Origin: Macrostomum lignano
Taxonomy: Eukaryota
Assembly: GCA_002269645.1 (NCBI GenBank)
Contig: NIVC01003074.1
Coordinates: forward strand, 1 to 52,033
Direction of reading: 5' to 3'
Length of the DNA stretch: 52,033 nt
The translations under genes were made by a program, and so were the position numbers. Below the pieces are notes generated by a model. It did not search any database. It saw only the letters and a list, made by a program, of their open reading frames with translations, and was not told where the DNA came from. Positions within the stretch are counted from its first letter, which is position 1. The number at the start of each line of letters is the position of its first letter. Shown piece after piece: positions 2,344 to 52,033 of the stretch.

Positions 2344-2404
2344 ACAATAACCGACCATATGTATTCTCTAATCAATTAACAATAACCGGCACAATCAGGA
2401 GAAC

Positions 2405-7772: not shown

Positions 7773-7811
7773 TCGTAACATGCCTAACGATTAGAAAGGC
7801 AGGTTCGCTGA

Positions 7812-8118: not shown

Positions 8119-8291
8119 TGTGAGCGGTGCATGAGTGTGTGCCTGCGTACAGTATTGGCTCGTTTGTATGTGCTATAAAATGCATTACTGAAACTTTATC
8201 ATACTTTATAAAATTCCAGTCATTGTTTGCCATCGGTAAACAGTCAACAAAGTCAGCAGTCAAATAAATCAACAGAGCCGATACTGCAATT

Positions 8292-10141
<1,850 letters not shown>

Positions 10142-13724: not shown

Positions 13725-22004
<8,280 letters not shown>

Positions 22005-27090: not shown

Positions 27091-27370
27091 GTGACACCTT
27101 AGTAAAAAAGTCCATTCTAATCTTTAAAAAGTTGTATCCTTGGGCCTAGCTAAAATATCCCTATCAGTCACTTGATAGTAAATAATGTTAGTAAAAAATC
27201 GCACCAAGTTCTAACTGAAATCTACGCACACAGCAACACACTATAAAAATGTTCAAATGCAAAAAAAAATTATCAAAGAAAAGATCATGCTTCAAAAAAG
27301 TACACTATACATTATACACTACACAAAATTATACACAAAAGTACACTATACTATACACTATACTTTTTTC

Positions 27371-27592
27371 TAGACACTATATTTCTATCTAGACTGTCTG
27401 TCTGTCTAGACACTAGACACTATTTTTCTATCTAGACTGTCTGTCTGTCTAGACACTAGACACTATTTTTCTATCTAGACTGTCTGTCTGTCTAGACACT
27501 AGACACTGTTTTTCTATCTAGACTGTCTGTCTGTCTATAGACACTAGACACTATTTTTCTATCTAGACTGTCTGTCTGTCTAGACACTATAT
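27371..27592. repeat. 43-bp minisatellite, ~5 copies
   Basis: Unit TAGACACTAGACACTATTTTTCTATCTAGACTGTCTGTCTGTC. Confidence 0.93.
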
Positions 27593-28844: not shown

Positions 28845-28850
28845 TATAAA
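28845..28850 (+). promoter_or_regulatory. Candidate TATA box of the WSC/lectin gene
   Basis: CTCTATAAATAAG about 105 nt upstream of the signal-peptide ATG at 28954. Positional inference only. Confidence 0.4.
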
Positions 28851-28953
28851 TAAGGTGTCAGTTTTTAGGCCAAATCTTCGCTTCTAAATTTCTTGCGAGA
28901 TCGGCAAGAAAGTTACTACCTGCGATTTGATTGGCAACAACAGGCAAACTAAA

Positions 28954-29011
28954 ATGGCGTGCAAAGGCTGGCTATTGATGGCTGCGTGCCTTCTGCATGT
29001 GCTGTCTCAAG
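28954..29011 (+). CDS. Exon 1, signal peptide MACKGWLLMAACLLHVLSQ
   Basis: aaaATG, hydrophobic core, donor G|GTGAGT in phase 1. Joins exon 29528 to give ...VLSQAHS-YRYIGCFVD. Confidence 0.85.
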
Positions 29012-32000
29012 GTGAGTGACCTCCGCCAGCACTGAAAGGCCTATGTAGCACCATTATTCAAGCTAGTTAACATCCAATTATTTGTTTGTTACTTCTCTTG
29101 TGTATTGATATAATACGTAATATTCCGTAGAATCACACTGTCGTCTATGACCATTGCATCAGAATTGCTTCTGATGTCTATGGCAGCGTTAACTTGAGAA
29201 ACACAGGTCAACAAGCCAGCTGAGAACCAACAGCGGTTCTCCTTTACCTCTAGCTTTACCCGCTTTCTTTCCATAGCAATCGCTAGAACTGACAGTAAAT
29301 TGCCAATTAACAACATGAGCATTTTGCTTCTTCATCAATTGGTTACTCTACTCGCGAGTGCTGCAAGTGAAACCTCATAGTGTCCATGCAGTAGCATAAC
29401 CCAAATTAATCGGCAATTTTCGGCACAAAAGACACATAAACGAGTTCAAACGAGAATGCATTATACAATCAACCAATTATCCTAATACCTAAACGCAATT
29501 CACTAACATTACTACATTCCTATGCAGCGCATTCCTACCGCTACATCGGGTGCTTTGTGGACAAAGGCAAACGGGATCTGCCGGTACTGGGCGGAACTGG
29601 ACACATGTACGCGGGTAAGTGCGACCGGCTCTGCCGCAAAAGGAACTACCGCTACTTCGGTCTGCAGTACTCCAAAGAGTGCTGGTGCGGCAACAGCTAC
29701 GGCAAGTACGGAGCGCGTCGGTCCAGTGAGTGCCGGATGCGCTGCAGCGGCAGCCGAGGCTCTTACTGCGGCTCAAGCTGGCGCAACAGCATCTACGCGA
29801 CCACCAAGCCAAGTGAGTCGGGGCTGAATGGCAAACCAGCGGTCCCGTTCAGTCTGTTGTGCAAGGCGCTTTGCCATAGCGAAAAATTCGGCCATAGAAC
29901 GATTAACGACAATAAAATAGCCAAAGTTATCTAAAGATTCGACTGCCAGTAAACAGTCTGTAATAACATATACAGTTCTTAGTGGATCGCGCAGCTAAAG
30001 CTTTACTGCCGCATTTTCTGATTTAATTGAATACGTCGTAGATCAACCCATGTGACATCGGTTTAAATTATGTTTGTTAAACTAGACTTTAAAAATTGCA
30101 CACTTGTTAAAAACACAGCTCCAGGAATGCGATTCGTCGGCTGCTACATCGACAAGAAAAAGCGAGACCTACCAGTGATGGCCGGCTCCGGCTCGATGAG
30201 CATCCCGAAGTGCTACCGACTGTGCAGAGCAAAGAGATACGCCTACTTCGGTGTGCAGTACAGCAAGGAGTGCTGGTGCGGAAACAGCTACGGCAAGTAC
30301 GGAAAGAGATCCAAGTCCGAGTGCAGGATGAAATGCTCAGGTAACAGGTCGACCTTCTGCGGTTCGAGCTGGAGAAACAGCATCTACACCACTGGACTGC
30401 CAGCTCGAAGACGACCAAGAGTATGTAAGTGATACAACGCTCACTGACCAGCTAAGTTAGCAAATTTATTGAATTATTCTTCTTTTGGCATCATACTTGT
30501 CCAAAATTTTAGCCGCTATGCAATGACGTATTTACAAATTCTTGCTTTAAATTTAATTATCGTGCTTTTACAACCAAAAGAAAGCCTTTATACGCCGCCG
30601 TTGAAAGTCCAAATAGTATTTTCGTCAAAAGTGCACGTGATCAAATGTACACGATTTCAGCGAGGCTGCCTCTGTCCAGATGCTCGCAGCACTCCGTCGG
30701 TTGGAACGGTAAATGCAGTAGAGCCATCGATGGAAACACAAACCAAAACTATGGAAAGAAATCCTGCACCCACACCCGCACTGCGACCGGCGCCTGGTGG
30801 CAGGCGAGGACAAGCAGACGTGCCAGAATCACATCCGTCAGAATCTACAACAGGCGGGACTGTTGCGCCAACAGACTCAGGAACTTTGTGATCAAGGTCG
30901 ACGGTCGAGTGTGCGCGTCCTACCGCTCGTCGAGAGCGTTCTCTGTGAGGACGTTCAGGTGCAACGCAGTTGGTCGCACAGTCCGCATCCAGACGAGGAA
31001 TCGAGTACCGCTGACTCTGTGCGAAGTGCAAGTGTTCGGACGTTATGTAGGACGCACTCCAAAGCCGTCACGAGGTGAGTTTCTGTATTTTTAACTGGGA
31101 ATGTGAGATTAATTTCGGCTTTACTTGCACCACTGTTAATCTGTATGTTTCGTTGAATTTTCTTTGTTCAGTTTTTTGTTTAATTGATCACCGAAGCATT
31201 TCAAACAAAGCCAGTTTATGAAATTGAATTATAATTTTAGCTTGTCCAGCTGGGACGAAGGTGAAGCGAATCTCACGTCGTACCTGTTCTTGCAAGCCCG
31301 CGCCGGAGGAGCGACGGCTCGGTTCTCTCGTCTTCGTCATCGACATAACAGGCAGCATGGGCAGGGTGATCAACGCCGTTCGGAGGAACATCCGAAAGAT
31401 TCTCGCTGCAAACAGGCGCTTCAGTAACTACGTTGTCGCTACTTTCGGCGACCCTTATGTGAAGAACATGAAGAAGACCAAAGACGCTCGACAGGTGATT
31501 CGATTTCTCAATCGGCTTCGAGCATCCGGAGGTGGCGACTGTGCGGAGATGGCCATGTCTGGCGCACTGGACGCCGCAGCAGCTGCTGACCGCAACTCTG
31601 TCATGATGCTGTTCACCGACGCCTCGGCCAAGGACGCCCGACTGAAGGGTCGCGTATCGGCCAGGCTGAGGTCGAAAGGAATCAGGTTGTACACTGTCGC
31701 GAGCGGCAACCTTTGTCGGCGAGGCAGCGGACTTTACAAATCGTTGGCGAGAGGCTCAGGTGGCTACGTGGCGAGCCTGCGCTCCAGCTACTTCAACAAG
31801 GCAAGGGTTATATTTAATGACTTCTATTGTATACAGGGGGCTTTCGGCATTGTTATAATGTAAGGTCAGATGTAAACAAGCGAGGAGAAAATCGGTTATG
31901 CTTAATACCGGTACGTTAAACATTCAGCACAAAAAGGTACGTAAGCACGTAGGTACAGAATCTGAAGGGGTGGACACCTGTCTTTAGTTTGTCGTAGCCA

Positions 32001-35000
32001 GTCCTGTCTATTTTGTTCGATGGGTTGACCCTTACTGATATTAATAGCAGGAGAAGGGACAAGGCCTTTTTGTGCATGAGCCGCTAGTTACTGAGGCCGC
32101 GTACTAAATCGAGACCGTCTGCGTTTCATCTTTGCTTTGGCCAGTGTTTGTGCTTTTAAAAAAACGAATATAGTCCGAAAAATAGAAAAAATTGCTTAGT
32201 TTCATATTAGCTAAATTTTCTGAAAGGGCGTGGTTCAGCATGCTTTTTTTCTTTTCAATTGCAGCAAAGTGTTTAATGTCTAAAGTGTCTAGTGTGGCAG
32301 ACTTTTTTGTTATTCTTTTTTAGTTTAAAATACCTGACGACACTGTCTAGGTCATTAAAATGTTGCAGCCTCGCTGATTTTCACTTTGATTTATCAGTAA
32401 TCCTTTAATTACGTATTAACCTTCCTCCGTCTTTTTCAGCTGATGGAGTTTGTCAGGCGAGCAGCCAGTGGAAAAATGAGCTTCAGTGCCTTCCCAGCAA
32501 ACGCGGCAGCGCTAAACAAAGCTCTTCGAGGCCGTAAGCAAGAATTAGTTAATTTACAAAAAATATTTGTAGGCTTAGCCTTGAAAACCAATCATCAGGA
32601 TCTTACTAATACTCTTTGCAGGTTGCCGCTGTCGAAATATCAATCGTCGAATCTGTGTGCGAAATGGTGAGAACTGCAAGACCGTTTTGTAAAATATAAA
32701 TCATTTATTTGAAGCTCCACTGCACCTAATTTTCCGGACAATTCTTAGTGAAATAGATGCATTAATTGACTCAAAGAACTAAAGCAACAGGTGGACAACA
32801 AACACAAAATCGCAAAAACAAACCCACTAGCGAAATTGCAAGAGTCGCATAATTTTGGTGCAAAAAAATCCGATTGTGTTTTAACTGGAACCTATAGTAA
32901 TTTAAATTATGTTCATATATTTTATTCACTAAGTCTTCCATCCGCGGCAACTCATCCTGCTAGTAGTTTTCGCAGACTTGGAACTCATTTCACTTCAAAG
33001 ATCTGTTCTTTATCGCGTGTGTGCTCACCGAAATCTTGTAAATTTTGCAAGCAATGCTTGATAGTTGCCTCTGTCTTGCGACCTTTCATCACGGACTACT
33101 CTACTCGGAAAGGATACTACACAAAAAACAACCTCACATGATACTGCTATACGCATGCGTCTTGCTCAGCTTATTCTTCTCGGAAAGGATCCTCCCGATG
33201 TGTTGTAAATAGGCTTCTGCTTGGTATGTCTCGCTCGCGACTTGTCCACAACTACTGGATTGCCTGCAAGAATGTTGATGGGATCTGCTTTGTTCTTGAG
33301 CTATTTAGAAGCCTGTTAGAGGATATAAGTTTGCTACACAAGCACTGGGCCCTTGCGAGATGTGAGCCTTCTACAGAAGCAGCAACTTGTTAGCTCAGTG
33401 TGTTTTGTTGCAGCCCAGAAGGTGCAACGACCAGGTGACCAACCTAGGTCGGCAGCAAAATAAACAGCTGCTGATGGAGTTGGTCAGGCAAAAAAATTAC
33501 CGCTGTTCTGCATTAGCCGACGCGCCTGCCACAGAATGCCACACTGTCGAGTTTGCAATAACGCTTAGTGCAGAAGCGAACTGATTTTCCTGCATCATAT
33601 TAAACAAGTAGACAACGATTGTGAATTGAGCCAAACTGCTACTCACAAGGGCATTAATTCGCCTTGCTCTCTCCTTCACTTTCTATCTAGTTTCTTTTAT
33701 TTGCCTCTTACAGCATTTTCCTTGTAACTTTCCGTATATACTTTTAAATCACCCAATCTATGCAACTAAAGTAATGTAGCTCTAGCAAAGGTTCATTGCC
33801 TAATTCCGTTCACTTGCATGTAAGTTAAAGAAACCGGGCAGCTAACTACCAACAATTAAAAACAAAAAAAATTTGGGCCGAAAATCTCAAAACTTAGATT
33901 TGCTTTTAAGATATAGCAACTAGGATCATGTGAAAACAACTGTGACATGATTTACGATATCAGAATAAGTCAAAATCAATACGAAAAGAAACTCAGAAAA
34001 CCGGAATTTCACAGAAAACCGTTGCCCAAATTTAAAATCAGTTCACTGCAGAATGGCGCAACCCACCCTTATAAACAATTTCCAATATTAAAAAAATTTC
34101 ATTATGTCTCCTTACGTCTCCAGTTTCAGCGAGGCTGCCTCTGTCCAGATGCTCGCAGCACTCCGTCGGTTGGAACGGTAAATGCAGTAGAGCCATCGAT
34201 GGAAACACGAACCAAAACTATGGAAAGAAATCCTGCACCCACACCCGCACTGCGACCGGCGCCTGGTGGCAGGCGAGGACAAGCAGACGTGCCAGAATCA
34301 CATCCGTCAGAATCTACAACAGGCGGGACTGTTGCGCCAACAGACTCAGGAACTTTGTGATCAAGGTCGACGGTCGAGTGTGCGCGTCCTACCGCTCGTC
34401 GAGAGCGTTCTCTGTGAGGACGTTCAGGTGCAACGCAGTTGGTCGCACAGTCCGCATCCAGACGAGGAATCGAGTACCGCTGACTCTGTGCGAAGTGCAA
34501 GTGTTTGGACGTTATGCTAAAGGCCGATCGCGAAGCAGAAGTAAGAACAAAATAACCCTTTGCTCTTTGTATGACTTTAAAGTAGATTTCTATAGGCATT
34601 TCGTCGCCGAAATACAAGCTAAATATTTACCTCCTTTAAATCCTTTTAGCTCCGGGAATGCGATTCGTCGGCTGCTACATCGACAAGAAAAAGCGAGACC
34701 TACCAGTGATGGCCGGCTCCGGCTCGATGAGCATCCCGAAGTGCTACCGACTGTGCAGAGCAAAGAGATACGCCTACTTCGGTGTGCAGTACAGCAAGGA
34801 GTGCTGGTGCGGAAACAGCTACGGCAAGTACGGAAAGAGATCCAAGTCCGAGTGCAGGATGAAATGCTCGGGTAAAAAGTCCACCTTCTGCGGATCGAGC
34901 TGGAGAAACAGCATCTACACCACTGGACTGCCAGCTCGAAGACGACCAAGAGTATGTAAGTGATACAACGCTAACTGTCTAAAACTGAGTAGCAGATGTA

Positions 35001-38000
35001 ATTCTTCGCTTAGTATCATTATTTGTCATACAGTTTAAACGCTATATAGTGAGATGGAAATTAGTGACTTAAATTAACTTTGCGTGCTTTTATTACAAAT
35101 AGAAAGGCACTGTGCACCGGCGTTAAAATTCCAAGTACACTCGTGCTCAAATGTACACAATTTCAGCGAGACTGCCGCTGTCCAGATGCTCGCAGCATTC
35201 TATCGCTGCAAGAGGTAAATGCAGAAGAGCTATCGATGGAAACACGAACCAAAACTATGGAAAGAAATCCTGCACCCACACCCGCACTGCGACCGGCGCC
35301 TGGTGGCAGGCGAGGACAAGCAGACGTGCCAGAATCACATCCGTCAGAATCTACAACAGGCGGGACTGTTGCGCCAACAGACTCAGGAACTTTGTGATCA
35401 AGGTCGACGGTCGAGTGTGCGCGTCCTACCGCTCGTCGAGAGCGTTCTCTGTGAGGACGTTCAGGTGCAACGCAGTTGGTCGCACAGTCCGCATCCAGAC
35501 GAGGAATCGAGTACCGCTGACTCTGTGCGAAGTGCAAGTGTTTGGACGTTATGCTAAAGGCCGATCGCGAAGCAGAAGTAAGAACAAAATAACCCTTTGC
35601 TCTTTGTATGACTTTAAAGTAGATTCTATAGGCATTTCGTCGCCGAAATACAAGCTAAATATTTACCTCCTTTAAATCCTTTTAGCTCCGGGAATGCGAT
35701 TCGTCGGCTGCTACATCGACAAGAAAAAGCGAGACCTACCAGTGATGGCCGGCTCCGGCTCGATGAGCATCCCGAAGTGCTACCGACTGTGCAGAGCAAA
35801 GAGATACGCCTACTTCGGTGTGCAGTACAGCAAGGAGTGCTGGTGCGGAAACAGCTACGGCAAGTACGGAAAGAGATCCAAGTCCGAGTGCAGGATGAAA
35901 TGCTCGGGTAAAAAGTCCACCTTCTGCGGATCGAGCTGGAGAAACAGCATCTACACCACTGGACTGCCAGCTCGAAGACGACCAAGAGTATGTAAGTGAT
36001 ACAACGCTAACTGTCTAAAACTGAGTAGCAGATGTAATTCTTCGCTTAGTATCATTATTTGTCATACAGTTTAAACGCTATATAGTGAGATGGAAATTAG
36101 TGACTTAAATTAACTTTGCGTGCTTTTACTACCAATAGAAAGCCATTGTACAGCGGCGTTAAAAGCCGAGAATACACACGTGCTCAAATGTACACAATTT
36201 CAGCGAGGCTGCCTCTGTCCAGATGCTCGCAGCACTCCGTCGGTTGGAACGGTAAATGCAGTAGAGCCATCGATGGAAACACAAACAAAACTATGGAAAG
36301 AAATCCTGCACCCACACCCGCACTGCGACCGGCGCCTGGTGGCAGGCGAGGACAAGCAGACGTGCCAGAATCACATCCGTCAGAATCTACAACAGGCGGG
36401 ACTGTTGCGCCAACAGACTCAGGAACTTTGTGATCAAGGTCGACGGTCGAGTGTGCGCGTCCTACCGCTCGTCGAGAGCGTTCTCTGTGAGGACGTTCAG
36501 GTGCAACGCAGTTGGTCGCACAGTCCGCATCCAGACGAGGAATCGAGTACCGCTGACTCTGTGCGAAGTACAAGTGTTCGGACGTTATGTAGGACGCACT
36601 CCAAAGCCGTCACGAGGTGAGTTTCTGTATTTTTAACTGGGAATGTGAGATTAATTTCGGCTTTACTTGCACCACTGTTAATCTGTATGTTTCGTTGAAT
36701 TTTCTTTGTTCAGATTTTTGTTTAATTGATCACCGACCGAATTTCAAAAAAGCATGAAAGTTATTCCAGCTGGAACGAAGGCTGAAGCGAATCTCACGTC
36801 GTACCTGTTCTTGCAAGCCCGCGCCGGAAGAGCGACGGCTCGGCTCTCTCGTCTTCGTCATTGACATCACAGGCAGCATGGGCAGGGTGATTAACGCCGT
36901 TCGGAGGAACATCCGAAAGATTCTCGCTGCAAACAGGCGCTTCAGTAACTACGTTGTCGCTACTTTCGGCGACCCTTATGTGAAGAACATGAAGAAGACC
37001 AAAGACGCTCGACAGGTGATTCGATTTCTCAATCGGCTTCGAGCATCCGGAGGTGGCGACTGTGCGGAGATGGCCATGTCTGGCGCACTGGACGCCGCAG
37101 CAGCTGCTGACCGCAACTCTGTCATGATGCTGTTCACCGACGCCTCGGCCAAGGACGCCCGACTGAAGGGTCGCGTATCGGCCAGGCTGAGGTCGAAAGG
37201 AATCAGGTTGTACACTGTCGCGAGCGGCAACCTTTGTCGGCGAGGCAGCGGACTTTACAAATCGTTGGCGAGAGGCTCAGGTGGCTACGTGGCGAGCCTG
37301 CGCTCCAGCTACTTCAACAAGGCACGGTTTATCATTTTCTTAAGCCTTTATGTTTTTAGCGACGCAATTGAATATTTTTCCTTGTCTGCCAAATGATTGA
37401 GAAAGTGATGAATTATTCCGAGATGTGAACTAAAGCTATCCCGTTAAATTTATTAGCTCTGAGCATTGGCTGCTTCGTGTAGTCGGACTTCTTGGGTGTG
37501 AAAAAAAGTTCGGCTGAATAATTTCATTTGCACGCCTTAAACAACAGGGCAACGATTTTACGTGATTTATTTTTAGGGACGATGAATTTTTTATGTCTTT
37601 TTCTTTATGTTTGTAGTTGATGGAGTTCGTGAGGCGAGCAGCAAAGGGAAGAATGAGCTTCAGCGCTTTCCCAGCCAACGTAGCAGCACTAAACAGTGCA
37701 CTTCGTGGGCGTAAGTATAATTTTTTGAAATTACCAATATACCAGCTAATAAAAAAATTTTTCATATTGATAAATTCTGACACTTTTAGGTTGCCGTTGT
37801 CGCAACATTAACCGCTCGATCTGTGTCCGAAAGAGTAAGAGCATCTCTATTATCAGTGTTTTGAAATACAATTTTTGTAAAACATGATTTACTTAAAAGC
37901 GCTTCGGTTAATCTCTCTTAGCTCCCGGATTGAGAAAAGTTGGCTGCTTTGTCGATGCGAAATCTAGAGATCTACCTGTTCTGGCTGGATCTGGCTCAAT

Positions 38001-41000: not shown

Positions 41001-44000
41001 CCGATTATAGCTCGTACTTAACATCTTTTCAGCTAAAGGAGTCAGGTATCTTGGTTGCTACGTTGACAACAAAAAGCGAGACCTGCCTTTACTATTGAAC
41101 TCTCGTTCAAAGACTACCCGCAATTACTGTTACAAATCCTGCAAAGCACGTGGTTATCGCTATTTTGGTGTGCAGAACGGCAACCACTGCACGTGCGGCA
41201 ACTCGTACGGCCTGTTTGGTCGCGCTTCAGAGAAGAGCTGCCGATCGCTCTGTCAGGGCGAGAAGAGCACCTACTGCGGAGGTCCATGGAGAAACGCCGT
41301 CTACACAACCGGAGTCAGCAGACCGCTTGCTTCAAGTAAGATTGATTTTTCTTAATAACTTAAGTCACAGCGCCACAAAAGAAAAGATATGTGGCTTGCC
41401 ATTAAATTCATGACAATAGCTAACGTCGTTAAAGTTATATTTCAATATGAGCCAGTGAAAATTGAATTCAAAAGCATTAAAAAAACCATATATTTCAGCT
41501 TTTTAATTCATTTTGAGTCACCAAAATATCAAGCGCCTAAAATCATCATCAACTTCTCTTTCAGATAAGAGAGGGAATGATGATCTTATGCCAATCAAAG
41601 CTTCTAAATTGAGAGATAGTTGGTAGGGTTTTTGAATGATAAAACGTCTTGGTCACGAAGCTTTTATATGTGGTTTTATTATAGATCAACTATCCGCAAC
41701 TATTCTACCAGCTCGTGTCAAGAAGTCTAGCTTAGAAGCTAGACTCATCGTCGCTAAATCCAATATTCTATCCCTGATCTCACCTCTATTTTCATAACAC
41801 TTCATTTCAGCGCCGGGCATGACCAAGTTAGGATGTTTCATCGACAAGACTGCTCGCGACCTTCCAGTGCTGGGTGGCTCAGGCTCCATGAGCGCCGCCA
41901 AGTGCTATAAGCTTTGCAGAGGCAAGAAAAAGCGATTCTTTGGCATTCAGAATGGCAACGAGTGCAGGTGCGGCAATCACTACGGTCGCTATGGTAGGCG
42001 TTCACAAATCGAATGCAGAAAGCAGTGCACAGCAGACAAAACTGCCTACTGCGGTGCATCCTGGAGAAATATGATCTACACTACTGGACTGGATCTTGCT
42101 ACTTCTAGTAAGGAGGAATATTTCTCATAAATGAATTACACATACGCATACTTTGACCGAAGAGAAAACGAGAATTACATCGCTCTCGCATTATCTATAA
42201 TGCTTTATTTAGGCGTTGGGGTCCGAAAACTCGGTTGCTTCGTCGACAGAGCTAAGCGAGACCTGCCTCATCTGTACGCTGCTGGACACAGAACTAACAA
42301 AGCCTTCTGCTGGAGATACTGCAAAAATAGGGGCTACAAGTACTTTGGTCTGCAGTTTGGCAATCACTGTACATGCGGAAACACGTACGGTCGGTACGGA
42401 AAGGCTAAATCGTCTACCTGCTCCTCCGTGTGCAAAGGCGATCGGAGAAGAAAGTGCGGCGGTGCTTGGAGAAACGAGATTTTCACAACCGGACTGAGGT
42501 CCAGACGATACAAAAGTGAGATTCTCCAGCTTTACCTACTAAGATTTTAAACCAAAGTAAAAACAACATCGCGTACTATAAAAGTCGAACGCGCTAATCT
42601 AAATAAGTTAAAAAATTCACTTGCAGCACCTGGCATGCTCCATCTGGGTTGCTTTATTGACGCTAAGGCTCGCGATCTGCCCAAATTGGCTGGCAAGGGC
42701 CGCATGACTGTCGGAAAGTGCTACAACTTGTGCAGAAAGCTCAAGTACAGATTCTTTGGAGTGCAGTACGCAAGTCAGTGCTGGTGCGGTAACCACTACG
42801 GACGGTACGGTCTTCGCGACAAGAACGAGTGCCGCATGCAGTGCAGCGGCGACAAGACCACTTACTGCGGTGCAGGCTGGAGAAACGACATCTTCACAAC
42901 TGGTCTTTCGGCCAGGCCAAAAGGTAAGATTACTTAGTGTTGCAATGCCTATAATTTATATCGATTACTGAAACGAGCTATCATTTACGAAGCAACTATG
43001 ATTTTTGTCCACAGACTCGGCTTATCTTGGCTGCTTCATTGACAACGCAGCCCGCGACCTGCCCAAGGTGGTGAACGCTGGAGTGAAAGCCAACAGCCAC
43101 TACTGCATCAAGCTGTGCAAGCGTGCTGGCTACAAGTACGCCGGTTTGCAATACGCCAGTTACTGCACCTGCGGCAATAGCTACGGCTCTCTGGGTCGAG
43201 TCAGCAACAAGCAATGTAAAATGACGTGCAAGGGCGACAGGCGAGAGAAGTGCGGCGGACCGTGGAGGAACTCCGTCTACAGCACCGGACTCAAGACTAG
43301 AAAGGTGTCAAGTAAGTCTTCTTTTACACAAACTAACATAATGAACTTTTAGATTGTTAATTTTAAATGATCTTTGAGATAAATTTCAATTAATATCGTT
43401 GTTTTTAACAGCTCCGGGACTGAAGTACCTCGGCTGCTTCGTCGACAAAGCCACCAGAGATCTGAGACGCGAAGCTCCAAAAGGCCACATGAGCGTGCCC
43501 AAGTGCTACAGGTTCTGTCGAAAGCACAAGTACAAGTTCTTCGGAGTGCAATATGGCAACCATTGCTTCTGCGGCAATCACTATGGCCGATTCGGAATCA
43601 GACCGAACACGGAGTGCAGGATGCAGTGCAGTGGCGATAAGACTACTTACTGCGGTGCAGGCTGGAGAAACAGTGTGTACGCTACCGGCTTGGAGCTGGC
43701 TTCCACAGGTAAATATTTAATAAAAAGTCTACCAACACTGAAATTTCAATTTTTACATAATATCAATAAAATATAAAACGGTTTTTATTAAAGTGATGAG
43801 TGCTAGACATTTGAGCACGTGCTGACATCCATTGGATTCTGAATAATATTCAAAGCAACACCACCTTTCAGGAGCTGGAGTTCGCAAGCTCGGCTGCTAC
43901 GTCGACACAGCTAAGCGAGACCTGCCCCACCTGTACGCTGCTGGACACAAGACTAACAAAGCCTTCTGCTGGAGGTACTGTAAAGGCAAGGGTTACAAGT

Positions 44001-47000
44001 ACTTTGGACTGCAGTTCGGCAACCACTGTACATGCGGAAACACGTACGGTCGGTACGGTAGAGCAAAGGCGTCGTCATGCTCAGCAGTGTGCAAAGGCGA
44101 CCGACGAAGAAAGTGCGGCGGCACTTGGAGAAACGAGATTTTTACAACCGGACTGAGGTCCAAGAATGCTAAAAGTGAGTTATTGTTAGCTTTCCTACGT
44201 TTTAGCATGAGCTGCTTAATGTAGGCTCAACTTTTATTTTAACGTTCTTGGGCGTCCTCTGACTGTAGCTCAGCTTTTAGAACACAGCACTACTTTACAA
44301 AAGCCTGGGACAAAGAACATAGACAAATTAAACCCTCGCACTCCTCTTAGGTAAATTTACAGGTTCATATCGGTTTTCCATTCGATACAGAAAAAGAACA
44401 TAAGAGTGTTGAGTCTCAGTTCTCTCAATAAAAGAATATTGTTGTCAAAGTTAGTATCACTGCAGAGGCTTCATCCAACGGAATTTGCAGGTAAGCATTG
44501 GTGAAGTCGATGACGGCAAAAACGTTGCCCCGTCCAACTGGCTTAGGACGTCCTCGTTGCTTGGTGTGGTAGAGACCATGTCGTTTAACCAATTATTTAC
44601 TGTCACTTTATAATCCCCACGCAAACAAATCTTTCTATTCGGGTTTCTTACAGTCACGAATGGAGTAGACCATTTGCTCTGATCCACGGGCTTTAAGATC
44701 TTCTCCGCCACCAACCGTTCCAGTTCCAGCTTAACAGCATCACACATGCCGTAGCTGTCTGGTATTGGTCGTTGTTTAAAAAAACAATGGTGTAGCACCA
44801 TCCTTTAACGTGAGGTGCGCTCAAAATTAAGCAACTTAAAAGATGTTTAGATGAGGTTCCAGTGCGTGCATCCACTCGAGGCCATTAAAGATACTGGGAG
44901 CGTTTAGATTGTCTACCATGAATATCGGGAGGCTGCCGTCTTGCCTTGAAATTGCACGTTCACAATCGACTGTCCACATATCGGAACAACTCTTCCTTGG
45001 TAATCGTTGAAATTTCTGTCCGGTATTAGACTTCCGGTTTTCTCTGTTAGACCATCGAACAGTTTTCTAGAAATTAGCGAGGCATCTGGATTTGCCACGG
45101 TATTGAAAACCGTGTTGAAATCGGTCCCGTTAATGCGCAACTTTCTGTAGATTCTCTGACTGTCCCCTTGAAATAAGAACACTTGATCTCCATTGTCCCC
45201 TAGCTGCTTATCGACATCGTTCCGAACTTCCCCATGCATAACATAAGTCTGATAGAAAATGACCCGCTTGTAGGCTTACATCTTTGCGAAGATGTCTTGG
45301 GGTTTAGTGCTTTACAGACGGCTTTGAGATGTCCCACTTTTCTACAATATCCACACTTGAGCAGCTTGTCTCGACATTCCCTCTTCATGTGTACTTGCTT
45401 TCCACTGCAGAAGCAAGATATCTGTTTTCTTGCTTCTCAACGGTAGGCTCTTTCAGGCTGTTTTCATTGCCCAATTCCGGTGACGGGGTCGATTTCCCCC
45501 TGACTGGCGCATCTGTAATAGGCCTGAGTCCGCCATGTCCTCACCTCTTTACACAGATGCGCACGCTGTTGCAACAGCAGTGACCTTTTGCAGAGTTATT
45601 CCCGCGAGTTTCTCGGCCAATAGCTTGCGTAGAATATCTTATCTTTGTTCGAAAGTTCAAATATAAACTGGTCGCGAAGACGGTCCTTGACGTCGTTGGA
45701 ATCGCACTCGTCGGCCAGTTGATTCAGTCTAGGACTGTTCGACAAGGTATCCTCGTTGGGCTCCTGCCCTGTCCTGCGAAATACGTATCGGTAGGCGATT
45801 ACAGATTTCAGTGATTTTATCTTGTCACTCAGCAAGGTCTTCATGTCATCGTAGGACTTCTTCTCAGTATCGTCTGGCACGGCTGCATCTGCGAGAAGGT
45901 TACACATGCGCTTGCCAATAAGCGCTAGAAATGCGTCTTTCTGCTTTTCCTCCTTGAAGTCGTGAAATTTGCAGTGAATTTCGACTCTTCAAATCTACCT
46001 ATTCGAATCTTCACCATCTTCTAGTGTGTCCAGTGGGGAAAGCCTCGTCGCCATTGTTAGCTTTCTTCTTACGTTGTAGCATGAGCTGCCAATGTATTCT
46101 CAATCTTTATTTTCACGCTCAGCTTATAAATCACAACACTAAATTACAAATACGCTCGTATCTAAGGCATATAGAAAAACTAAACCCTCGCAGTTGTTAT
46201 TCAATACTTTATCATACATCGAACAAATTTAATGCTGCTTTGTTAAAAACTTGCAAAATGTGAAATTACACGGTGATGTACTTGTCAAACTCTCGTAAAA
46301 AAACAAACAGATGATAGCTTTGAACTATATCGCTCTCTTTTAGCACCAGGAATGCTACATCTCGGCTGCTTCGTCGACTCTAAAGCTCGCGACCTACCCA
46401 AATTAGCTGGCAAGGGCCGCATGACTGTCGGAAAGTGCTACAACTTGTGCAGAAAGCTCAAGTACAGATTCTTTGGAGTGCAGTACGCAAGTCAGTGCTG
46501 GTGCGGTAACCACTACGGACGGTACGGTCTTCGCGACAAGAACGAGTGCCGCATGCAGTGCAGCGGCGACAAGACCACTTACTGCGGTGCAGGCTGGAGA
46601 AACGACATCTTCACAACTGGTCTTTCGGCCAGGCCAAAAGGTAAGATTACTTAGTGTTGCAATGCCTATAATTTATATCGATTACTGAAACGAGCTATCA
46701 TTTACGACAGCAACTATGATTTTTGTCCACAGACTCGGCTTATCTTGGCTGCTTCATTGACAACGCAGCCCGCGACCTGCCCAAGGTGGTGAACGCTGGA
46801 GTGAAAGCCAACAGCCACTACTGCATCAAGCTGTGCAAGCGTGCTGGCTACAAGTACGCCGGTTTGCAATACGCCAGTTACTGCACCTGCGGCAATAGCT
46901 ACGGCTCTCTGGGTCGAGTCAGCAACAAGCAATGTAAAATGACGTGCAAGGGCGACAGGCGAGAGAAGTGCGGCGGACCGTGGAGGAACTCCGTCTACAG

Positions 47001-50000
47001 CACCGGACTCAAGACTAGAAAGGTGTCAAGTAAGTCTTCTTTTACACAAACTAACATAATGAACTTTTAGATTGTTAATTTTAAATGATCTTTGAGATAA
47101 ATTTCAATTAATATCGTTGTTTTTAACAGCTCCGGGACTGAAGTACCTCGGCTGCTTCGTCGACAAAGCCACCAGAGATCTGAGACGCGAAGCTCCAAAA
47201 GGCCACATGAGCGTGCCCAAGTGCTACAGGTTCTGTCGAAAGCACAAGTACAAGTTCTTCGGAGTGCAATATGGCAACCATTGCTTCTGCGGCAATCACT
47301 ATGGCCGATTCGGAATCAGACCGAACACCGAGTGCAGAATGCAGTGCAGCGGCGATAAGACTACTTACTGCGGTGCAGGCTGGAGAAACAGTGTGTACGC
47401 TACCGGCTTGGAGCTGGCTTCCACAGGTAAATATTTAATAAAAAGTCTACCAACACTGAAATTTCAATTTTTACATAATATCAATAAAATATAAAACGGT
47501 TTTTATTAAAGTGATGAGTGCTAGACATTTGAGCACGTGCTGACATCCATTGGATTCTGAATAATATTCAAAGCAACACCACCTTTCAGGAGCTGGAGTT
47601 CGCAAGCTCGGCTGCTACGTCGACACAGCTAAGCGAGACCTGCCCCACCTGTACGCTGCTGGACACAAGACTAACAAAGCCTTCTGCTGGAGGTACTGTA
47701 AAGGCAAGGGTTACAAGTACTTTGGACTGCAGTTCGGCAACCACTGTACATGCGGAAACACGTACGGTCGGTACGGTAGAGCAAAGGCGTCGTCATGCTC
47801 AGCAGTGTGCAAAGGCGACCGACGAAGAAAGTGCGGCGGCACTTGGAGAAACGAGATTTTTACAACCGGACTGAGGTCCAAGAATGCTAAAAGTGAGTTA
47901 TTGTTAGCTTTCCTACGTTTTAGCATGAGCTGCTTAATGTAGGCTCAACTTTTATTTTAACGTTCTTGGGCGTCCTCTGACTGTAGCTCAGCTTTTAGAA
48001 CACAGCACTACTTTACAAAAGCCTGGGACAAAGAACATAGACAAATTAAACCCTCGCACTCCTCTTAGGTAAATTTACAGGTTCATATCGGTTTTCCATT
48101 CGATACAGAAAAAGAACATAAGAGTGTTGAGTCTCAGTTCTCTCAATAAAAGAATATTGTTGTCAAAGTTAGTATCACTGCAGAGGCTTCATCCAACGGA
48201 ATTTGCAGGTAAGCATTGGTGAAGTCGATGACGGCAAAAACGTTGCCCCGTCCAACTGGCTTAGGACGTCCTCGTTGCTTGGTGTGGTAGAGACCATGTC
48301 GTTTAACCAATTATTTACTGTCACTTTATAATCCCCACGCAAACAAATCTTTCTATTCGGGTTTCTTACAGTCACGAATGGAGTAGACCATTTGCTCTGA
48401 TCCACGGGCTTTAAGATCTTCTCCGCCACCAACCGTTCCAGTTCCAGCTTAACAGCATCACACATGCCGTAGCTGTCTGGTATTGGTCGTTGTTTAAAAA
48501 AACAATGGTGTAGCACCATCCTTTAACGTGAGGTGCGCTCAAAATTAAGCAACTTAAAAGATGTTTAGATGAGGTTCCAGTGCGTGCATCCACTCGAGGC
48601 CATTAAAGATACTGGGAGCGTTTAGATTGTCTACCATGAATATCGGGAGGCTGCCGTCTTGCCTTGAAATTGCACGTTCACAATCGACTGTCCACATATC
48701 GGAACAACTCTTCCTTGGTAATCGTTGAAATTTCTGTCCGGTATTAGACTTCCGGTTTTCTCTGTTAGACCATCGAACAGTTTTCTAGAAATTAGCGAGG
48801 CATCTGGATTTGCCACGGTATTGAAAACCGTGTTGAAATCGGTCCCGTTAATGCGCAACTTTCTGTAGATTCTCTGACTGTCCCCTTGAAATAAGAACAC
48901 TTGATCTCCATTGTCCCCTAGCTGCTTATCGACATCGTTCCGAACTTCCCCATGCATAACATAAGTCTGATAGAAAATGACCCGCTTGTAGGCTTACATC
49001 TTTGCGAAGATGTCTTGGGGTTTAGTGCTTTACAGACGGCTTTGAGATGTCCCACTTTTCTACAATATCCACACTTGAGCAGCTTGTCTCGACATTCCCT
49101 CTTCATGTGTACTTGCTTTCCACTGCAGAAGCAAGATATCTGTTTTCTTGCTTCTCAACGGTAGGCTCTTTCAGGCTGTTTTCATTGCCCAATTCCGGTG
49201 ACGGGGTCGATTTCCCCTGACTGGCGCATCTGTAATAGGCCTGAGTCCGCCATGTCCTCACCTCTTTACACAGATGCGCACGCTGTTGCAACAGCAGTGA
49301 CCTTTTGCAGAGTTATTCCGCGAGTTTCTCGGCCAATAGCTTGCGTAGAATATCTTATCTTTGTTCGAAAGTTCAAATATAAACTGGTCGCGAAGACGGT
49401 CCTTGACGTCGTTGGAATCGCACTCGTCGGCCAGTTGATTCAGTCTAGGACTGTTCGACAAGGTATCCTCGTTGGGCTCCTGCCCTGTCCTGCGAAATAC
49501 GTATCGGTAGGCGATTACAGATTTCAGTGATTTTATCTTGTCACTCAGCAAGGTCTTCATGTCATCGTAGGACTTCTTCTCAGTATCGTCTGGCACGGCT
49601 GCATCTGCGAGAAGGTTACACATGCGCTTGCCAATAAGCGCTAGAAATGCGTCTTTCTGCTTTTCCTCCTTGAAGTCGTGAAATTTGCAGTGAATTTCGA
49701 CTCTTCAAATCTACCTATTCGAATCTTCACCATCTTCTAGTGTGTCCAGTGGGGAAAGCCTCGTCGCCATTGTTAGCTTTCTTCTTACGTTGTAGCATGA
49801 GCTGCCAATGTATTCTCAATCTTTATTTTCACGCTCAGCTTATAAATCACAACACTAAATTACAAATACGCTCGTATCTAAGGCATATAGAAAAACTAAA
49901 CCCTCGCAGTTGTTATTCAATACTTTATCATACATCGAACAAATTTAATGCTGCTTTGTTAAAAACTTGCAAAATGTGAAATTACACGGTGATGTACTTG

Positions 50001-52033
50001 TCAAACTCTCGTAAAAAAACAAACAGATGATAGCTTTGAACTATATCGCTCTCTTTTAGCACCAGGAATGCTACATCTCGGCTGCTTCGTCGACTCTAAA
50101 GCTCGCGACCTACCCAAATTAGCTGGCAAGGGCCGCATGACTGTCGGAAAGTGCTACAACTTGTGCAGAAAGCTCAAGTACAGATTCTTTGGAGTGCAGT
50201 ACGCAAGTCAGTGCTGGTGCGGTAACCACTACGGACGGTACGGTCTTCGCGACAAGAACGAGTGCCGCATGCAGTGCAGCGGCGACAAGACCACTTACTG
50301 CGGTGCAGGCTGGAGAAACGACATCTTCACAACTGGTCTTTCGGCCAGGCCAAAAGGTAAGATTACTTAGTGTTGCAATGCCTATAATTTATATCGATTA
50401 CTGAAACGAGCTATCATTTACGACAGCAACTATGATTTTTGTCCACAGACTCGGCTTATCTTGGCTGCTTCATTGACAACGCAGCCCGCGACCTGCCCAA
50501 GGTGGTGAACGCTGGAGTGAAAGCCAACAGCCACTACTGCATCAAGCTGTGCAAGCGTGCTGGCTACAAGTACGCCGGTTTGCAATACGCCAGTTACTGC
50601 ACCTGCGGCAATAGCTACGGCTCTCTGGGTCGAGTCAGCAACAAGCAATGTAAAATGACGTGCAAGGGCGACAGGCGAGAGAAGTGCGGCGGACCGTGGA
50701 GGAACTCCGTCTACAGCACCGGACTCAAGACTAGAAAGGTGTCAAGTAAGTCTTCTTTTACACAAACTAACATAATGAACTTTTAGATTGTTAATTTTAA
50801 ATGATCTTTGAGATAAATTTCAATTAATATCGTTGTTTTTAACAGCTCCGGGACTGAAGTACCTCGGCTGCTTCGTCGACAAAGCCACCAGAGATCTGAG
50901 ACGCGAAGCTCCAAAAGGCCACATGAGCGTGCCCAAGTGCTACAGGTTCTGTCGAAAGCACAAGTACAAGTTCTTCGGAGTGCAATATGGCAACCATTGC
51001 TTCTGCGGCAATCACTATGGCCGATTCGGAATCAGACCGAACACCGAGTGCAGAATGCAGTGCAGCGGCGATAAGACTACTTACTGCGGTGCAGGCTGGA
51101 GAAACAGTGTGTACGCTACCGGCTTGGAGCTGGCTACCACTGGTAAATATTTTTAGACGATAAAAGTATTAATATTGACTTTTCGATTTGTATATATTAC
51201 CTTCAAACATGAAAAGAGCCAGCCGTCTTTTTAAGTAGTGAGTGCCTAAAAATTGAGCACTAGCTTGCAATCAAAAATATATTTGAGAAATGCAGAAATG
51301 CTACGTGCTGACATCCATTGGATTCTGAATAATATTCAAAGCAACACCACCTTTCAGGAGCTGGAGTTCGCAAGCTCGGCTGCTACGTCGACAAAGCTAA
51401 ACGAGACTTGCCCCACCTGTACGCTGCTGGACACAAGACTAACAAAGCCTTCTGCTGGAGGTACTGTAAAGGCAAGGGTTACAAGTACTTTGGACTGCAG
51501 TTCGGCAACCACTGTACATGCGGAAACACGTACGGTCGATACGGTAAAGCAAAGGCGTCGTCATGCTCAGCAGTGGCAAAGGCGACCGACGAAGAAAGTG
51601 CGGCGGCACTTGGAGAAACGAGATTTTCACAACCGGACTGAGGTCCAAGAAGGCTAAAAGTGAGTTATTATTTAATACTTTATCATGCATCGAAAAAATT
51701 ATTGCTGCTTTGTTAAAAACTTGCAAAAATGTGAAATTACACGGTGTTACTTGTCAAACTCTCGCTAAAAAACAAACAGATGAAAGCTTTGAACTATATC
51801 GCTCTCTTTTAGCACAGGAATGCTACATCTCGGCTGCTTCGTCGACTCTAAAGCTCGCGACCTACCCAAATTGCTGGCAAGGGCCGCATGGACTGTCGGA
51901 AAGTGCTACAACTTGTGCAGAAAGCTCAAGTACAGATTCTTTGGAGTGCAGTACGCAAGTCAGTGCTGGTGCGGTAACCACTACGGACGGTACGGTCTTC
52001 GCGACAAGAACGAGTGCCGCATGCAGTGCAGCG
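28954..52033 (+). CDS. Giant secreted multidomain WSC / F-type lectin / vWA protein (3' end beyond the window; ~3700 aa in window)
   Basis: Order: SP-WSC-WSC-FTP-vWA-FTP-WSC-FTP-WSC-FTP-vWA-WSCx6-FTP-WSCx15 plus a partial WSC. Each exon was bounded by splice sites and phase-checked. No stop or transmembrane segment is seen in the intended frame, apart from scattered 1-bp indels near 36286, 36782, 37831, 51576 and 51813-51895. Confidence 0.88.
29528..30424 (+). CDS. WSC domain exons 1-2 (29528-29812, 30119-30424)
   Basis: GCxxD...RDLP...C...C...YFGxQYSKECWCGN...C.M.CSG....CGSSWRNSIY, the WSC eight-cysteine pattern. Confidence 0.92.
30661..31074 (+). CDS. F-type lectin (FTP/fucolectin) domain exon a
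   Basis: RAIDGN...SCTHT...WWQ...NRRDCCANRL...LTLCEVQV. The fucose-binding motif H-X26-R-X-D-X4-R is exact (26 residues counted). Confidence 0.92.
31241..32666 (+). CDS. vWA module 1 (exons 31241-31800, 32440-32533, 32622-32666)
   Basis: LVFVIDITGSMG (DxTxS MIDAS variant), FGDP, GGGDCAEM and LFTDASAKD, typical of hemicentin/VWA7-type vWA domains. GC donor after 31800. Confidence 0.88.
34130..36616 (+). CDS. FTP b (34130-34540), WSC (34650-34955), FTP c (35167-35577), WSC (35686-35991), FTP d (36204-36616)
   Basis: Tandem [FTP-WSC] units with a ~1036-bp period. FTP d has a 1-bp deletion near 36286 relative to FTP a. Confidence 0.9.
36770..37835 (+). CDS. vWA module 2 (exons ~36770-37321, 37617-37710, 37790-37835)
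   Basis: Near-identical vWA exon to 31241-31800 with the same GC donor. +1 indels near 36782 and 37831. Confidence 0.82.
37922..40320 (+). CDS. Six diverged WSC exons (37922-38221, 38323-38622, 38864-39160, 39247-39546, 39637-39936, 40024-40320)
   Basis: Each is 297-300 nt, GT-AG, phase 1-1, with the full WSC cysteine pattern. Confidence 0.92.
40404..40814 (+). CDS. F-type lectin domain exon e (diverged)
   Basis: TKLPLSHCSQHSTTWKAPCIRAIDGNTNQHFFKHSCTHT...HNRQDCCAKRL; H-X26-R-X-D-X4-R intact. 411 nt, phase 1-1. Confidence 0.9.
41033..44174 (+). CDS. Seven WSC exons (41033-41335, 41811-42107, 42213-42515, 42627-42923, 43015-43311, 43412-43708, 43872-44174)
   Basis: Each is 297-303 nt, phase 1-1, with the WSC pattern. 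Confidence 0.92.
44184..46192 (-). mobile_element. Internally deleted Ty3/Gypsy (Mag-like) LTR retrotransposon, copy 1, intronic
   Basis: LTRs TG...CA at 46055-46192 and 44184-44340. PBS TGGCGACGAGG (46053-46043, minus). PPT AAGAGGAG next to the 3' LTR. 5-bp TSD GTTAT/GTTGT. Frameshifted gag (LRDQFI), two CCHC knuckles (second CGYCRKVGHLKAVC), degenerate protease, and RT N-terminus (WSTPFVTV...GDYKVTVN). RNase H and integrase are absent. Confidence 0.9.
46344..47892 (+). CDS. Four WSC exons, duplicate unit 2 (46344-46640, 46733-47029, 47130-47426, 47590-47892)
   Basis: Copies of 42627-44174, phase 1-1. Confidence 0.9.
47902..49908 (-). mobile_element. Internally deleted Ty3/Gypsy LTR retrotransposon, copy 2
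   Basis: Near-identical to 44184-46192, at the same intron position with the same TSD. Confidence 0.9.
50060..52033 (+). CDS. WSC exons of units 3-4 (50060-50356, 50449-50745, 50846-51142, 51358-51659, 51813-end)
   Basis: Same four-exon unit without the LTR element. The last two exons carry 1-bp indels, and the window end truncates the final one. Confidence 0.82.

Follow-up and report, generated by a model that had tools for sequence, protein, structure and literature searches.

A 3'-incomplete Macrostomum lignano gene predicted to encode a giant secreted mosaic of WSC, F-type lectin and vWA domains

The last 23 kb of a 52,033-nt stretch of the Macrostomum lignano genome (contig NIVC01003074.1, positions 1 to 52,033; referred to here as the window) consist of one open segment after another encoding WSC, F-type lectin (FTP) and von Willebrand factor A (vWA) domains. 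This raises the question if these segments form one gene or several, and what kind of product they would specify. We propose that positions 28954-52033 (+ strand) belong to one very large, 3'-incomplete gene that arose as phase-1 symmetric exons, each carrying one domain, were shuffled and repeatedly duplicated in tandem, and that encodes a secreted multi-lectin chain of >3,700 aa that would act as a glycan cross-linker; we put the probability of this reading at about 0.6. The gene model was derived from the forward-strand genomic sequence by domain and splice prediction.

From 28 kb on, stop-to-stop translation of the + strand gave regular open segments of ~80-270 aa, most of them 100-130 aa long. 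Each domain lies on its own exon, preceded by a pyrimidine-rich YAG acceptor and followed by a GT(A/G)AG donor, and nearly every junction is in phase 1. We modelled 38 exons with AG/GT splice sites, the exceptions being two GC donors; their 11,210 nt make up 3,737 codons without a stop once the frame has been repaired (see below). Introns are mostly 79-300 nt long (median 153 nt), with three longer ones of 1.46, 2.17 and 2.17 kb. The modules follow each other in the order SP - WSC2 - FTP - vWA - FTP - WSC - FTP - WSC - FTP - vWA - WSC6 - FTP - WSC3 - (WSC4)n..., where SP is the signal peptide and a digit after WSC gives the number of WSC modules in a row.

Scanning 28000-52033 for an ATG followed by a hydrophobic core and a phase-1 donor returned two candidate starts, at 28954 and 29315. 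Joined to exon 2, the former (MACKGWLLMAACLLHVLSQ) reproduces the N-terminus (...LLHVLSQAHSYRYIGCFVD) of the paralog P0006 (BOX15_Mlig029288g1), a complete protein of 475 aa with the architecture SP-WSC-FTP-FTP-WSC, whose signal peptide and WSC1 are shared with the window gene at 79% identity. An earlier annotation note on this DNA (the original prediction) had placed the only signal-peptide exon at the same position. The second candidate, 29315-29366 (MSILLLHQLVTLLASAA), was rejected: it lies within intron 1 and has no homology support, whereas 28954 performed better in the scan, has a perfect donor and matches P0006. The mini-ORF at 29315 is probably spurious, although it could be an alternative first exon. 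At the other end, tblastn with the terminal WSC and LCCL modules of paralogs found neither an LCCL exon in the window nor a terminal-type WSC exon like those closing the paralogs; since the window also ends within exon 38, the 3' end of the gene lies outside it. A 19-residue hydropathy scan found no transmembrane segment in the product within the window (maximum 1.37), in agreement with the original prediction of ~3700 aa running over 23 kb with no second start, stop or transmembrane exon.

The domain matches are far above chance. Searching all three + frames of the whole window with the WSC core expression GC[FY]xD ... WRNx[IV][YF] yielded 26 cores, which run from 29548 to a final one at 51832 that is truncated where the window stops; none lies upstream of 28954. 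F-type lectin cores were located at 30723, 34192, 35229, 36266 and 40466, and vWA cores at 31330 and 36851. Pfam searches with the spliced conceptual protein gave the same numbers (WSC PF01822, 26 matches with 1359 bits in total; F5_F8_type_C_2 PF22633, five; VWA_4 PF25106, two), so that the originally reported 26 WSC, 5 fucolectin and 2 hemicentin-type vWA domains were recovered by both approaches. Single WSC exons reach 5e-18 to 1e-20 against PF01822, above the gathering score. Eight Cys are present in 24 of the 25 complete copies; the remaining copy has a repaired unknown residue at a Cys position. Their best PDB match is the WSC domain of KREMEN1 (1e-9). Fungal WSC domains bind carbohydrates.

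For the FTPs, phmmer against the PDB retrieved FBP32 (3cqo, 3e-27), Sm-hPAF, S. pneumoniae FRP (2j1r) and eel AAA (1k12, 4e-13). The fucose triad H-X26-R-X-D-X4-R was detected by regular expression in all five copies, in FTP4 only once a missing base that precedes it had been restored, just as had been claimed, and its spacing equals that of His52/Arg79/Arg86 in the eel agglutinin AAA (PMC5712786). A sequence-only PDB search with the vWA module gave no match. Its single main exon was modelled by AlphaFold with alternating strands and helices (predicted local distance difference test, pLDDT, 81.7; predicted template modelling score, pTM, 0.78), and the top Foldseek matches were the integrin beta I-like, ITIH1, alpha2delta and CMG2 vWA domains (E 1e-8 to 1e-6). 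The motifs FTDA and GGGDC.E are invariant in the vWA family alignment.

Each vWA module continues from its main exon into two mini-exons of 94 and 45 nt, which stand out as conservation islands between the two vWA modules in an otherwise unalignable intron, with mainly synonymous changes. The main exons appear to be followed by GC-AG introns (donors at 31801-31802 and 37322-37323). A GT donor considered in their place (AGG/GTTATA in copy 1; the slash marks the exon boundary) was rejected because copy 2 has no GT in phase. The GC donors were retained; a paralog has a canonical GT donor (AAG/GTGACA) at the very codon where they lie. Database models provide further support for the junctions. UniProt models P0001-3 (A0A1I8G3S4, A0A1I8J1D5 and A0A1I8J1F0) match the WSC2-4/FTP1-4 part and confirm its splice junctions; in P0001 the junction peptides ...RRRPRV/S/RLPLS... 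(WSC-to-FTP) and ...RSRSR/T/PGMRF... (FTP-to-WSC) are identical. Equivalent junctions ...FNK/LMEF... and ...LRG/xCxC... recur in P0019, P0058 and P0077, and that of exon 6, the first vWA1 mini-exon, recurs in P0019 and P0058. P0081 is a complete 273-aa SP-vWA open reading frame (ORF) on a 1,073-bp Logan contig in which vWA, tail and Cys-rich linker are continuous; the contig is too short for introns and must therefore come from spliced RNA of a relative.

Several observations weigh against a single gene for a secreted glycan cross-linker. Among the predicted proteins returned from a 5.8-billion-protein database none bridges FTP to vWA, and for the vWA exons, FTP5 and WSC11-17 no database protein exceeds 66% identity, so that this part of the gene is unannotated. 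Both vWA main exons require non-canonical GC donors, and the frame is broken by six single-base indels (FTP4 ~36287, vWA2 36782, WSC25 ~51577 and three in WSC26). The all-symmetric exons also permit many shorter isoforms. With the 3' end of the gene beyond the window, a transmembrane segment or glycosylphosphatidylinositol anchor could be encoded there. The metal ion-dependent adhesion site of the vWA domains reads D-I-T-G-S, Thr replacing the first Ser of D-x-S-x-S, and our searches brought up no glycan to which an animal WSC domain binds.

Some of these points bear on the possibility that the region gives rise to several shorter transcripts or isoforms, by internal promoters, alternative polyadenylation, spliced-leader (SL) trans-splicing or exon skipping, such that the three domain types would rarely or never meet in one polypeptide. 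Database models indeed split the region and none carries all three domains, short members exist (P0006, and P0082 with SP-vWA and 273 aa), any subset of the phase-1 symmetric exons would splice in frame, and an in-frame stop follows a few codons into the intron after each FTP exon. However, internal exons start mid-codon, including the vWA exons, which have neither a start codon nor a signal peptide and follow their FTP exons after short introns of 166 and 153 nt. The sole internal start candidate is the one in intron 1, most introns are too short for a terminator plus a promoter, and a terminal-type WSC exon is missing from the window. Moreover, paralog models join WSC arrays to vWA, and unconnected transcripts are a known feature of giant secretory genes in M. 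lignano: Mlig-ap1 and Mlig-ap2 each first showed up as several (PMC6410801). We regard a split into separate transcripts as unlikely.

The frame breaks deserve separate consideration. After six single-base repairs the single-gene model has one signal-peptide exon, compatible phases and no internal stop or terminal exon; if left as it is, the sequence loses its frame at ~codon 1090 and runs into a stop at codon 1142. The original prediction of one ORF had allowed for a single indel, in the fourth FTP copy, and has to be corrected in this respect. If the frameshifts were real, the locus could be a partly decaying pseudogene, expressed for no more than its first ~1,100 codons or not at all; alternatively, the repeat units described below could be mis-assembled alleles or collapsed repeats. 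The six indels, the 99.6% identity of units and the end of the window inside a repeat would fit such a view, as would the fact that M. lignano assemblies are repeat-rich and long-read based. The pattern of differences speaks against it, though. Four coding single-base indels fall within the last 730 bases (51303-52033), and the final 250 bases differ from the previous repeat copy by 3 indels and 1 substitution, which looks like a signature of error and not of decay. The FTP4 deletion sits in an A-rich run that is mis-framed differently in the independent UniProt models P0007 and P0003. Because of these indel-dominated differences at the end and the mis-framed run, most of the six indels are probably consensus errors of a long-read assembly whose consensus looks poor at the contig end.

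The ratio of nonsynonymous to synonymous substitution rates (dN/dS) argues in the same direction. It was estimated by the Nei-Gojobori method for old and recent exon duplicates and, for three of the four WSC types of the repeat unit, against the paralogous gene in locus L001 (see below). In every pair for which dS was not saturated the ratio was 0.04-0.37, and in saturated pairs the proportion of nonsynonymous differences (pN) was well below that of synonymous ones (pS); from the dN/dS values we infer that the exons evolved under purifying selection, old duplicates and the paralog comparison included. An intronic insert of ~2 kb that is present in two repeat units and missing from the third likewise argues for distinct copies. 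Decay or mis-assembly as an explanation of the locus thus strikes us as quite improbable, and we retain the single-gene reading.

Self-BLAST revealed a 3,717-bp unit with four WSC exons at 42625-46341 and 46342-50058 (99.6% DNA identity). A third 3.7-kb unit starts at 50059; it is incomplete and 96-98% identical where comparable. The three four-WSC units hold 12 WSC copies, and about half of all WSC copies are 96-100% identical recent tandem copies. WSC2-4 are mutually 97-100% identical. Altogether, the 25 complete WSC copies comprise ~13-14 protein types with 42-80% identity between types, the remainder being near-identical recent copies. The WSC-FTP(-vWA) block has been duplicated too (93-99% identity), and FTP1-4 are nearly identical to one another. 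UniProt A0A1I8G3S4 (P0001) has four consecutive WSC-FTP units before the FTP type that precedes vWA, compared with three in 34130-36616, which may reflect either copy-number variation or a collapse between assemblies or haplotypes.

In units 1 and 2, the ~2-kb insert (44185-46191 and 47903-49907) occupies part of the intron that follows the fourth WSC exon. Its absence from unit 3 places the unit duplication after the insertion, or unit 3 before it. On the antisense (-) strand the insert contains ORFs at 44460-44804, 44916-45275 and 45599-45988, and their copies, for which Pfam gave no match; going by our own reading of a reverse transcriptase-like stretch (DYKVTVNNWL), it looks retroelement-derived.

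What would such a gene product do? The product so far has 3,737 aa and 418 kDa, an isoelectric point (pI) of 10.2 and a net charge of ~+575; it contains 11.8% Arg and 8.1% Lys (20% K+R), 4.6% Asp+Glu and 7% Cys, and only two N-glycosylation sequons. It is thus predicted to be a secreted, polycationic, disulfide-rich chain with >30 lectin modules and at least two vWA modules. The F-type lectin domains would bind terminal fucose and the WSC domains a second glycan class, while the vWA modules may give metal-dependent protein-protein contacts, either for self-association or for docking to a matrix partner, and the polycationic surface could add electrostatic affinity for sulfated or acidic glycoconjugates. 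With >30 lectin sites per chain, this would result in a high-avidity cross-linker that gels or coheres a glycoconjugate-rich secretion or agglutinates glycan-coated targets. The role proposed here is that of a putative multivalent polycationic glycan cross-linker of a secretion. The original prediction had suggested a cross-linker in mucus, glue, rhabdite or egg-coat secretions, or else a protein agglutinating microbes, which is plausible. M. lignano has a giant cohesive glue protein rich in Cys and K/R, Mlig-ap1, which contains a lectin domain and whose function is blocked by polyanions (PMC6410801). By analogy, Mlig-ap1 may be taken as an in-species precedent for a K/R-rich, Cys-rich, lectin-bearing giant secretory protein acting as a cohesive glue.

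The WSC-FTP part of the gene is 96-99% identical to M. lignano UniProt fragments named 'WSC domain-containing protein'. Proteins combining WSC, FTP and vWA were not found among the predicted proteins returned from the database search. The pairings WSC+FTP and WSC+vWA are already present in UniProt/NCBI as uncharacterised proteins, and WSC+FTP also in a few metagenomic proteins (P0028, P0029, P0043). UniRef relatives bear the name 'Hemicentin-1-like von Willebrand factor A domain-containing protein', and one source names a relative VWA7-like. The original prediction's view that the three-domain combination is unfamiliar agrees with the database proteins returned here; two of its pairings are known, however, and the gene has a family and is not an isolated oddity.

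Besides P0006 and P0082, relatives include P0017 and P0019 with vWA+LCCL repeats, and P0054 (UniProt A0A1I8JDU5) and P0058 (BOX15_Mlig000253g1), both organised as (four-WSC unit)n - vWA - terminal WSC. The locus of P0058, L001 (NIVC01001234.1), ends with a vWA, a terminal WSC and a stop, with no transmembrane segment. Its positions 1-10000 hold at least six tandem, unannotated vWA units (period ~1,584 bp, P0017/P0019-type vWA+LCCL) on the same strand directly upstream of BOX15_Mlig000253g1, a gene that probably extends far beyond its 821-aa model. Since these extra units are unannotated, giant under-annotated arrays seem to be typical of the family. P0058/L001 and P0054 resemble the window gene in having the four-WSC unit in the same order, vWA plus two mini-exons, phase-1 exons and tandem amplification (52-60% identity). 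Unlike the window gene, L001, whose product is uncharacterised, has vWA+LCCL upstream, lacks FTP exons over the 27 kb that were read and shows its 3' end (vWA, divergent terminal WSC, stop); P0001-3 and P0006 differ from the window gene in having no vWA domain. From these comparisons, the gene is assigned to a Macrostomum-specific family of exon-shuffled lectin/vWA mosaics with small and giant members, and the predicted WSC+FTP+vWA combination is a new, unannotated domain architecture within that family. Literature searches found nothing pairing an F-type lectin with a WSC domain, or a WSC domain with a flatworm, and those combining Macrostomum with fucolectin or hemicentin returned nothing relevant to the gene.

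Several known systems share individual features with the predicted protein. The N-terminal vWA domains of hemicentin-1 and VWA7 have the same best Pfam family (VWA_4) and the motifs GGGDC(P/A)E and FTDA. As a whole, however, the window product has no Ig array, EGF, G2F or VWA7_N/GBD flanks, and its vWA occurs twice and internally; families other than WSC, F5_F8-type and vWA were not found by Pfam in the 3,737 aa. Judged by this predicted domain content, the product is no orthologue of hemicentin or VWA7. With fish FBP32/AAA and oyster sperm bindin, the window FTPs have the F-type fold and the His-Arg-Arg fucose triad in common, but those fish and oyster lectins are small proteins with F-type lectin domains alone or with few partners, whereas in the window gene these domains are a minority within a WSC/vWA giant. 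Tandem F-type lectin domains give multivalent cross-linking, oyster bindin having 1-5 repeats in varying number, and a 2017 review of F-type lectins nowhere mentions WSC (PMC5712786).

Mlig-ap1 (C-type lectin, vWD/C8/TIL, EGF) and Mlig-ap2 (vWD, TIL, LDL, TSP1) are, like the window product, giant, repetitive, Cys-rich, K/R-rich and secreted, with carbohydrate-binding domains, and charge-based cohesion is documented for Mlig-ap (PMC6410801). Yet Pfam detected none of their domain families in the window product, consistent with the earlier view that it differs from the described Macrostomum adhesives (PMC6410801), and its charge is spread over folded domains, in contrast to the low-complexity KR regions of Mlig-ap. 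In bivalves, Saccostrea LOC134242777 (P0059; 33% identity over 77% of the query) has a WSC array together with another lectin type. The partners in these bivalve mosaics, which are likewise uncharacterised, are SUEL-type Gal-lectin and Kringle and not F-type lectin or vWA.

This leads to the question in which secretion the product might act. In M. lignano, 76 transcripts limited to the prostate are seminal-fluid candidates, and no annotated class is more frequent among them than WSC-domain proteins (PMC5977470 Table S1). These prostate transcripts are a published lead that the original prediction did not contain (PMC5977470, PMC6953679, PMC4490696). Among the M. lignano WSC proteins met with in our searches, they alone have published expression or RNAi data. 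Because small WSC proteins dominate the prostate-limited transcripts, a reproductive secretion is, by analogy, our best single guess for the site of action. The product might belong to the prostate/seminal fluid, the egg coat or the cement gland and cross-link sperm, antrum or egg glycans, with an array copy number that evolves fast as in oyster sperm bindin; we put this forward as a tentative option. The relevant WSC matches among the 76 transcripts, the most frequent annotation, are named 'fungistatic metabolite', 'WSC-domain-containing' and 'transmembrane receptor' (PMC5977470); Mlig-pro46, which is WSCD2-like, affects sperm competitiveness (PMC6953679), and RNA815_80.4 is prostate-specific with two WSC domains (PMC4490696). 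Variable-number tandem F-lectin arrays mediate gamete recognition in oysters (PMC5712786), and the near-identical units as well as the WSC-FTP copy numbers of the window and P0001 would be compatible with a similar lability. On the other hand, BLAST matches to fucolectin, hemicentin, vWF or discoidin are absent from all 76 transcripts, so that the prostate link can serve as a lead but is no finding. The prostate WSC proteins are secreted and from the same species, but small (2-3 WSC domains, ~1-kb transcripts, no F-type lectin or vWA matches) and of distant sequence kinship to the window gene. RNA815_80.4, considered as a candidate for the window gene itself, was rejected; it is only distantly related in sequence. 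Finally, seminal proteins typically evolve fast, whereas dN/dS is low here.

A humoral or mucosal pattern-recognition agglutinin, binding fucosylated and beta-glucan- or chitin-like microbial surfaces and clumping them with the aid of its cationic charge, could be assembled from the same modules. The product is multivalent and strongly basic, and the paralog array contains vWA+LCCL modules, which we take to resemble cochlin. The closest solved FTP relatives are the immune fucolectins FBP32 and eel AAA (functions PMC5712786). Giant tandem arrays, however, are unusual for soluble pattern-recognition receptors, which normally become multivalent by oligomerising small subunits, and the near identity of FTP1-4 leaves little binding-site diversification; an agglutinin therefore appears improbable to us.

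Taking the cross-linker of a secretion one step further, the locus might encode the principal structural lectin of one Macrostomum secretion (most plausibly ejaculate, antrum or egg-attachment material), with gel or plug properties set by module number, an array homogenised by concerted evolution and a copy number varying between individuals, as a flatworm counterpart of oyster bindin or mucin-type loci. We consider this rather doubtful; if true, arrays of animal WSC domains would for the first time have a defined biological role and a glycan ligand. Likewise, the prostate WSC link, if true, would be relevant to seminal-fluid biology in hermaphrodites. More generally, a flatworm model for bioadhesion and sexual selection would gain, with this gene, a third type of giant secretory scaffold, one made entirely of folded lectin modules. 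Current gene sets miss or fragment the gene. Animal WSC domains are abundant and functionally obscure, and 26 of them beside fucose lectins offer a tractable route to ligands. The locus is also a clean case of phase-1 exon shuffling with very recent tandem amplification, and, with its near-identical repeats and a contig end rich in indels, it calls for caution as to annotation quality in the M. lignano genome.

Table 1. Predicted features of the gene (a slash in donor sequences marks the exon boundary)
Feature	Position	Strand	Evidence and remarks
Candidate TATA box TATAAATA	28845..28852	+	~100 nt upstream of start codon; read from the sequence
Exon 1, start codon and signal peptide MACKGWLLMAACLLHVLSQ	28954..29011	+	ends in phase 1, donor GTGAGT; SP scan, P0006 match
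Exon 2, WSC1	29528..29812	+	Pfam WSC 5e-18; AG/GT, phase 1-1
Exon 3, WSC2	30119..30424	+	Pfam WSC 1e-20; donor GTAAGT; best PDB match KREMEN1 WSC, 1e-9
Exon 4, FTP1	30661..31074	+	PF22633 6e-13; PDB FBP32 3cqo 3e-27; fucose triad; WSC-to-FTP junction as in P0001
Exon 5, vWA1 main, GC donor AAG/GCAAGG	31241..31800	+	VWA_4 PF25106 2e-35; AlphaFold/Foldseek vWA fold
Exon 6, vWA1 tail mini-exon b (LMEFVRRAASGKMSFSAFPANAAALNKALRG)	32440..32533	+	82%-identical island vs copy 2; dN/dS 0.095
Exon 7, Cys-rich linker mini-exon c (CRCRNINRRICVRN)	32622..32666	+	conserved vs copy 2, changes mostly synonymous
Exon 8, FTP2	34130..34540	+	core scan, splice sites, triad, Pfam
Exon 9, WSC3	34650..34955	+	core scan, splice sites, Pfam
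Exon 10, FTP3	35167..35577	+	core scan, splice sites, triad
Exon 11, WSC4	35686..35991	+	core scan, splice sites
Exon 12, FTP4, 1-base deletion near 36287 (AAACCAAAAC to AAACAAAAC)	36204..36616	+	core scan, model alignment
Exon 13, vWA2 main, extra base at 36782 vs vWA1, GC donor AAG/GCACGG	36770..37321	+	VWA_4 1e-35
Exon 14, vWA2 tail mini-exon b	37617..37710	+	conservation vs copy 1
Exon 15, Cys-rich linker mini-exon c (vWA2)	37790..37834	+	conservation vs copy 1
Exon 16, WSC5	37922..38221	+	core scan, splice sites
Exon 17, WSC6	38323..38622	+	core scan, splice sites
Exon 18, WSC7	38864..39160	+	core scan, splice sites
Exon 19, WSC8	39247..39546	+	core scan, splice sites
Exon 20, WSC9	39637..39936	+	core scan, splice sites
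Exon 21, WSC10	40024..40320	+	core scan, splice sites
Exon 22, FTP5, divergent copy	40404..40814	+	PF22633 6e-13; triad; dN/dS 0.17 vs FTP1
Exon 23, WSC11	41033..41335	+	core scan, splice sites
Exon 24, WSC12	41811..42107	+	core scan, splice sites
Exon 25, WSC13	42213..42515	+	core scan, splice sites; dN/dS 0.12 vs WSC17
Four-WSC unit copy 1, exons 26-29	42627..44174	+	WSC14 42627-42923, WSC15 43015-43311, WSC16 43412-43708, WSC17 43872-44174
Four-WSC unit copy 2, exons 30-33	46344..47892	+	WSC18 46344-46640, WSC19 46733-47029, WSC20 47130-47426, WSC21 47590-47892
Four-WSC unit copy 3, exons 34-37	50060..51659	+	WSC22 50060-50356, WSC23 50449-50745, WSC24 50846-51142, WSC25 51358-51659
WSC25 (exon 37), 1-base deletion near 51577	51358-51659	+	breaks the frame
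Exon 38, WSC26, starts fourth unit, cut by window end	51813..52033	+	three 1-base indels vs WSC22, zero substitutions in exon

Upstream of the gene, ORFs on the + strand at 5252-5752, 6276-6974 and 8268-9100 matched ATG12 (PF04110, 5e-32), a COMMD HN domain (1e-28) and, weakly and below threshold, a Yip1/YIF1-like family; by these matches, the neighbours are classed as ordinary metazoan housekeeping-type genes. Long GC-rich (up to 63%) open frames at 14939-20009 (+), with a Ser/Ala/Gln-rich low-complexity translation and no Pfam match, possibly represent another gene of unassigned type. The 29 kb upstream of the gene also contain micro- and minisatellites at 1-827, 1287-2243, 9107-9828, 13949-14926, 15703-16147, 20682-21054 and 27370-27589 (periods of 9, 25, 4, 30, 4, 30 and 43 nt, respectively; up to 185 copies), and several of these arrays lie within open reading frames, where they give rise to low-complexity peptide repeats.

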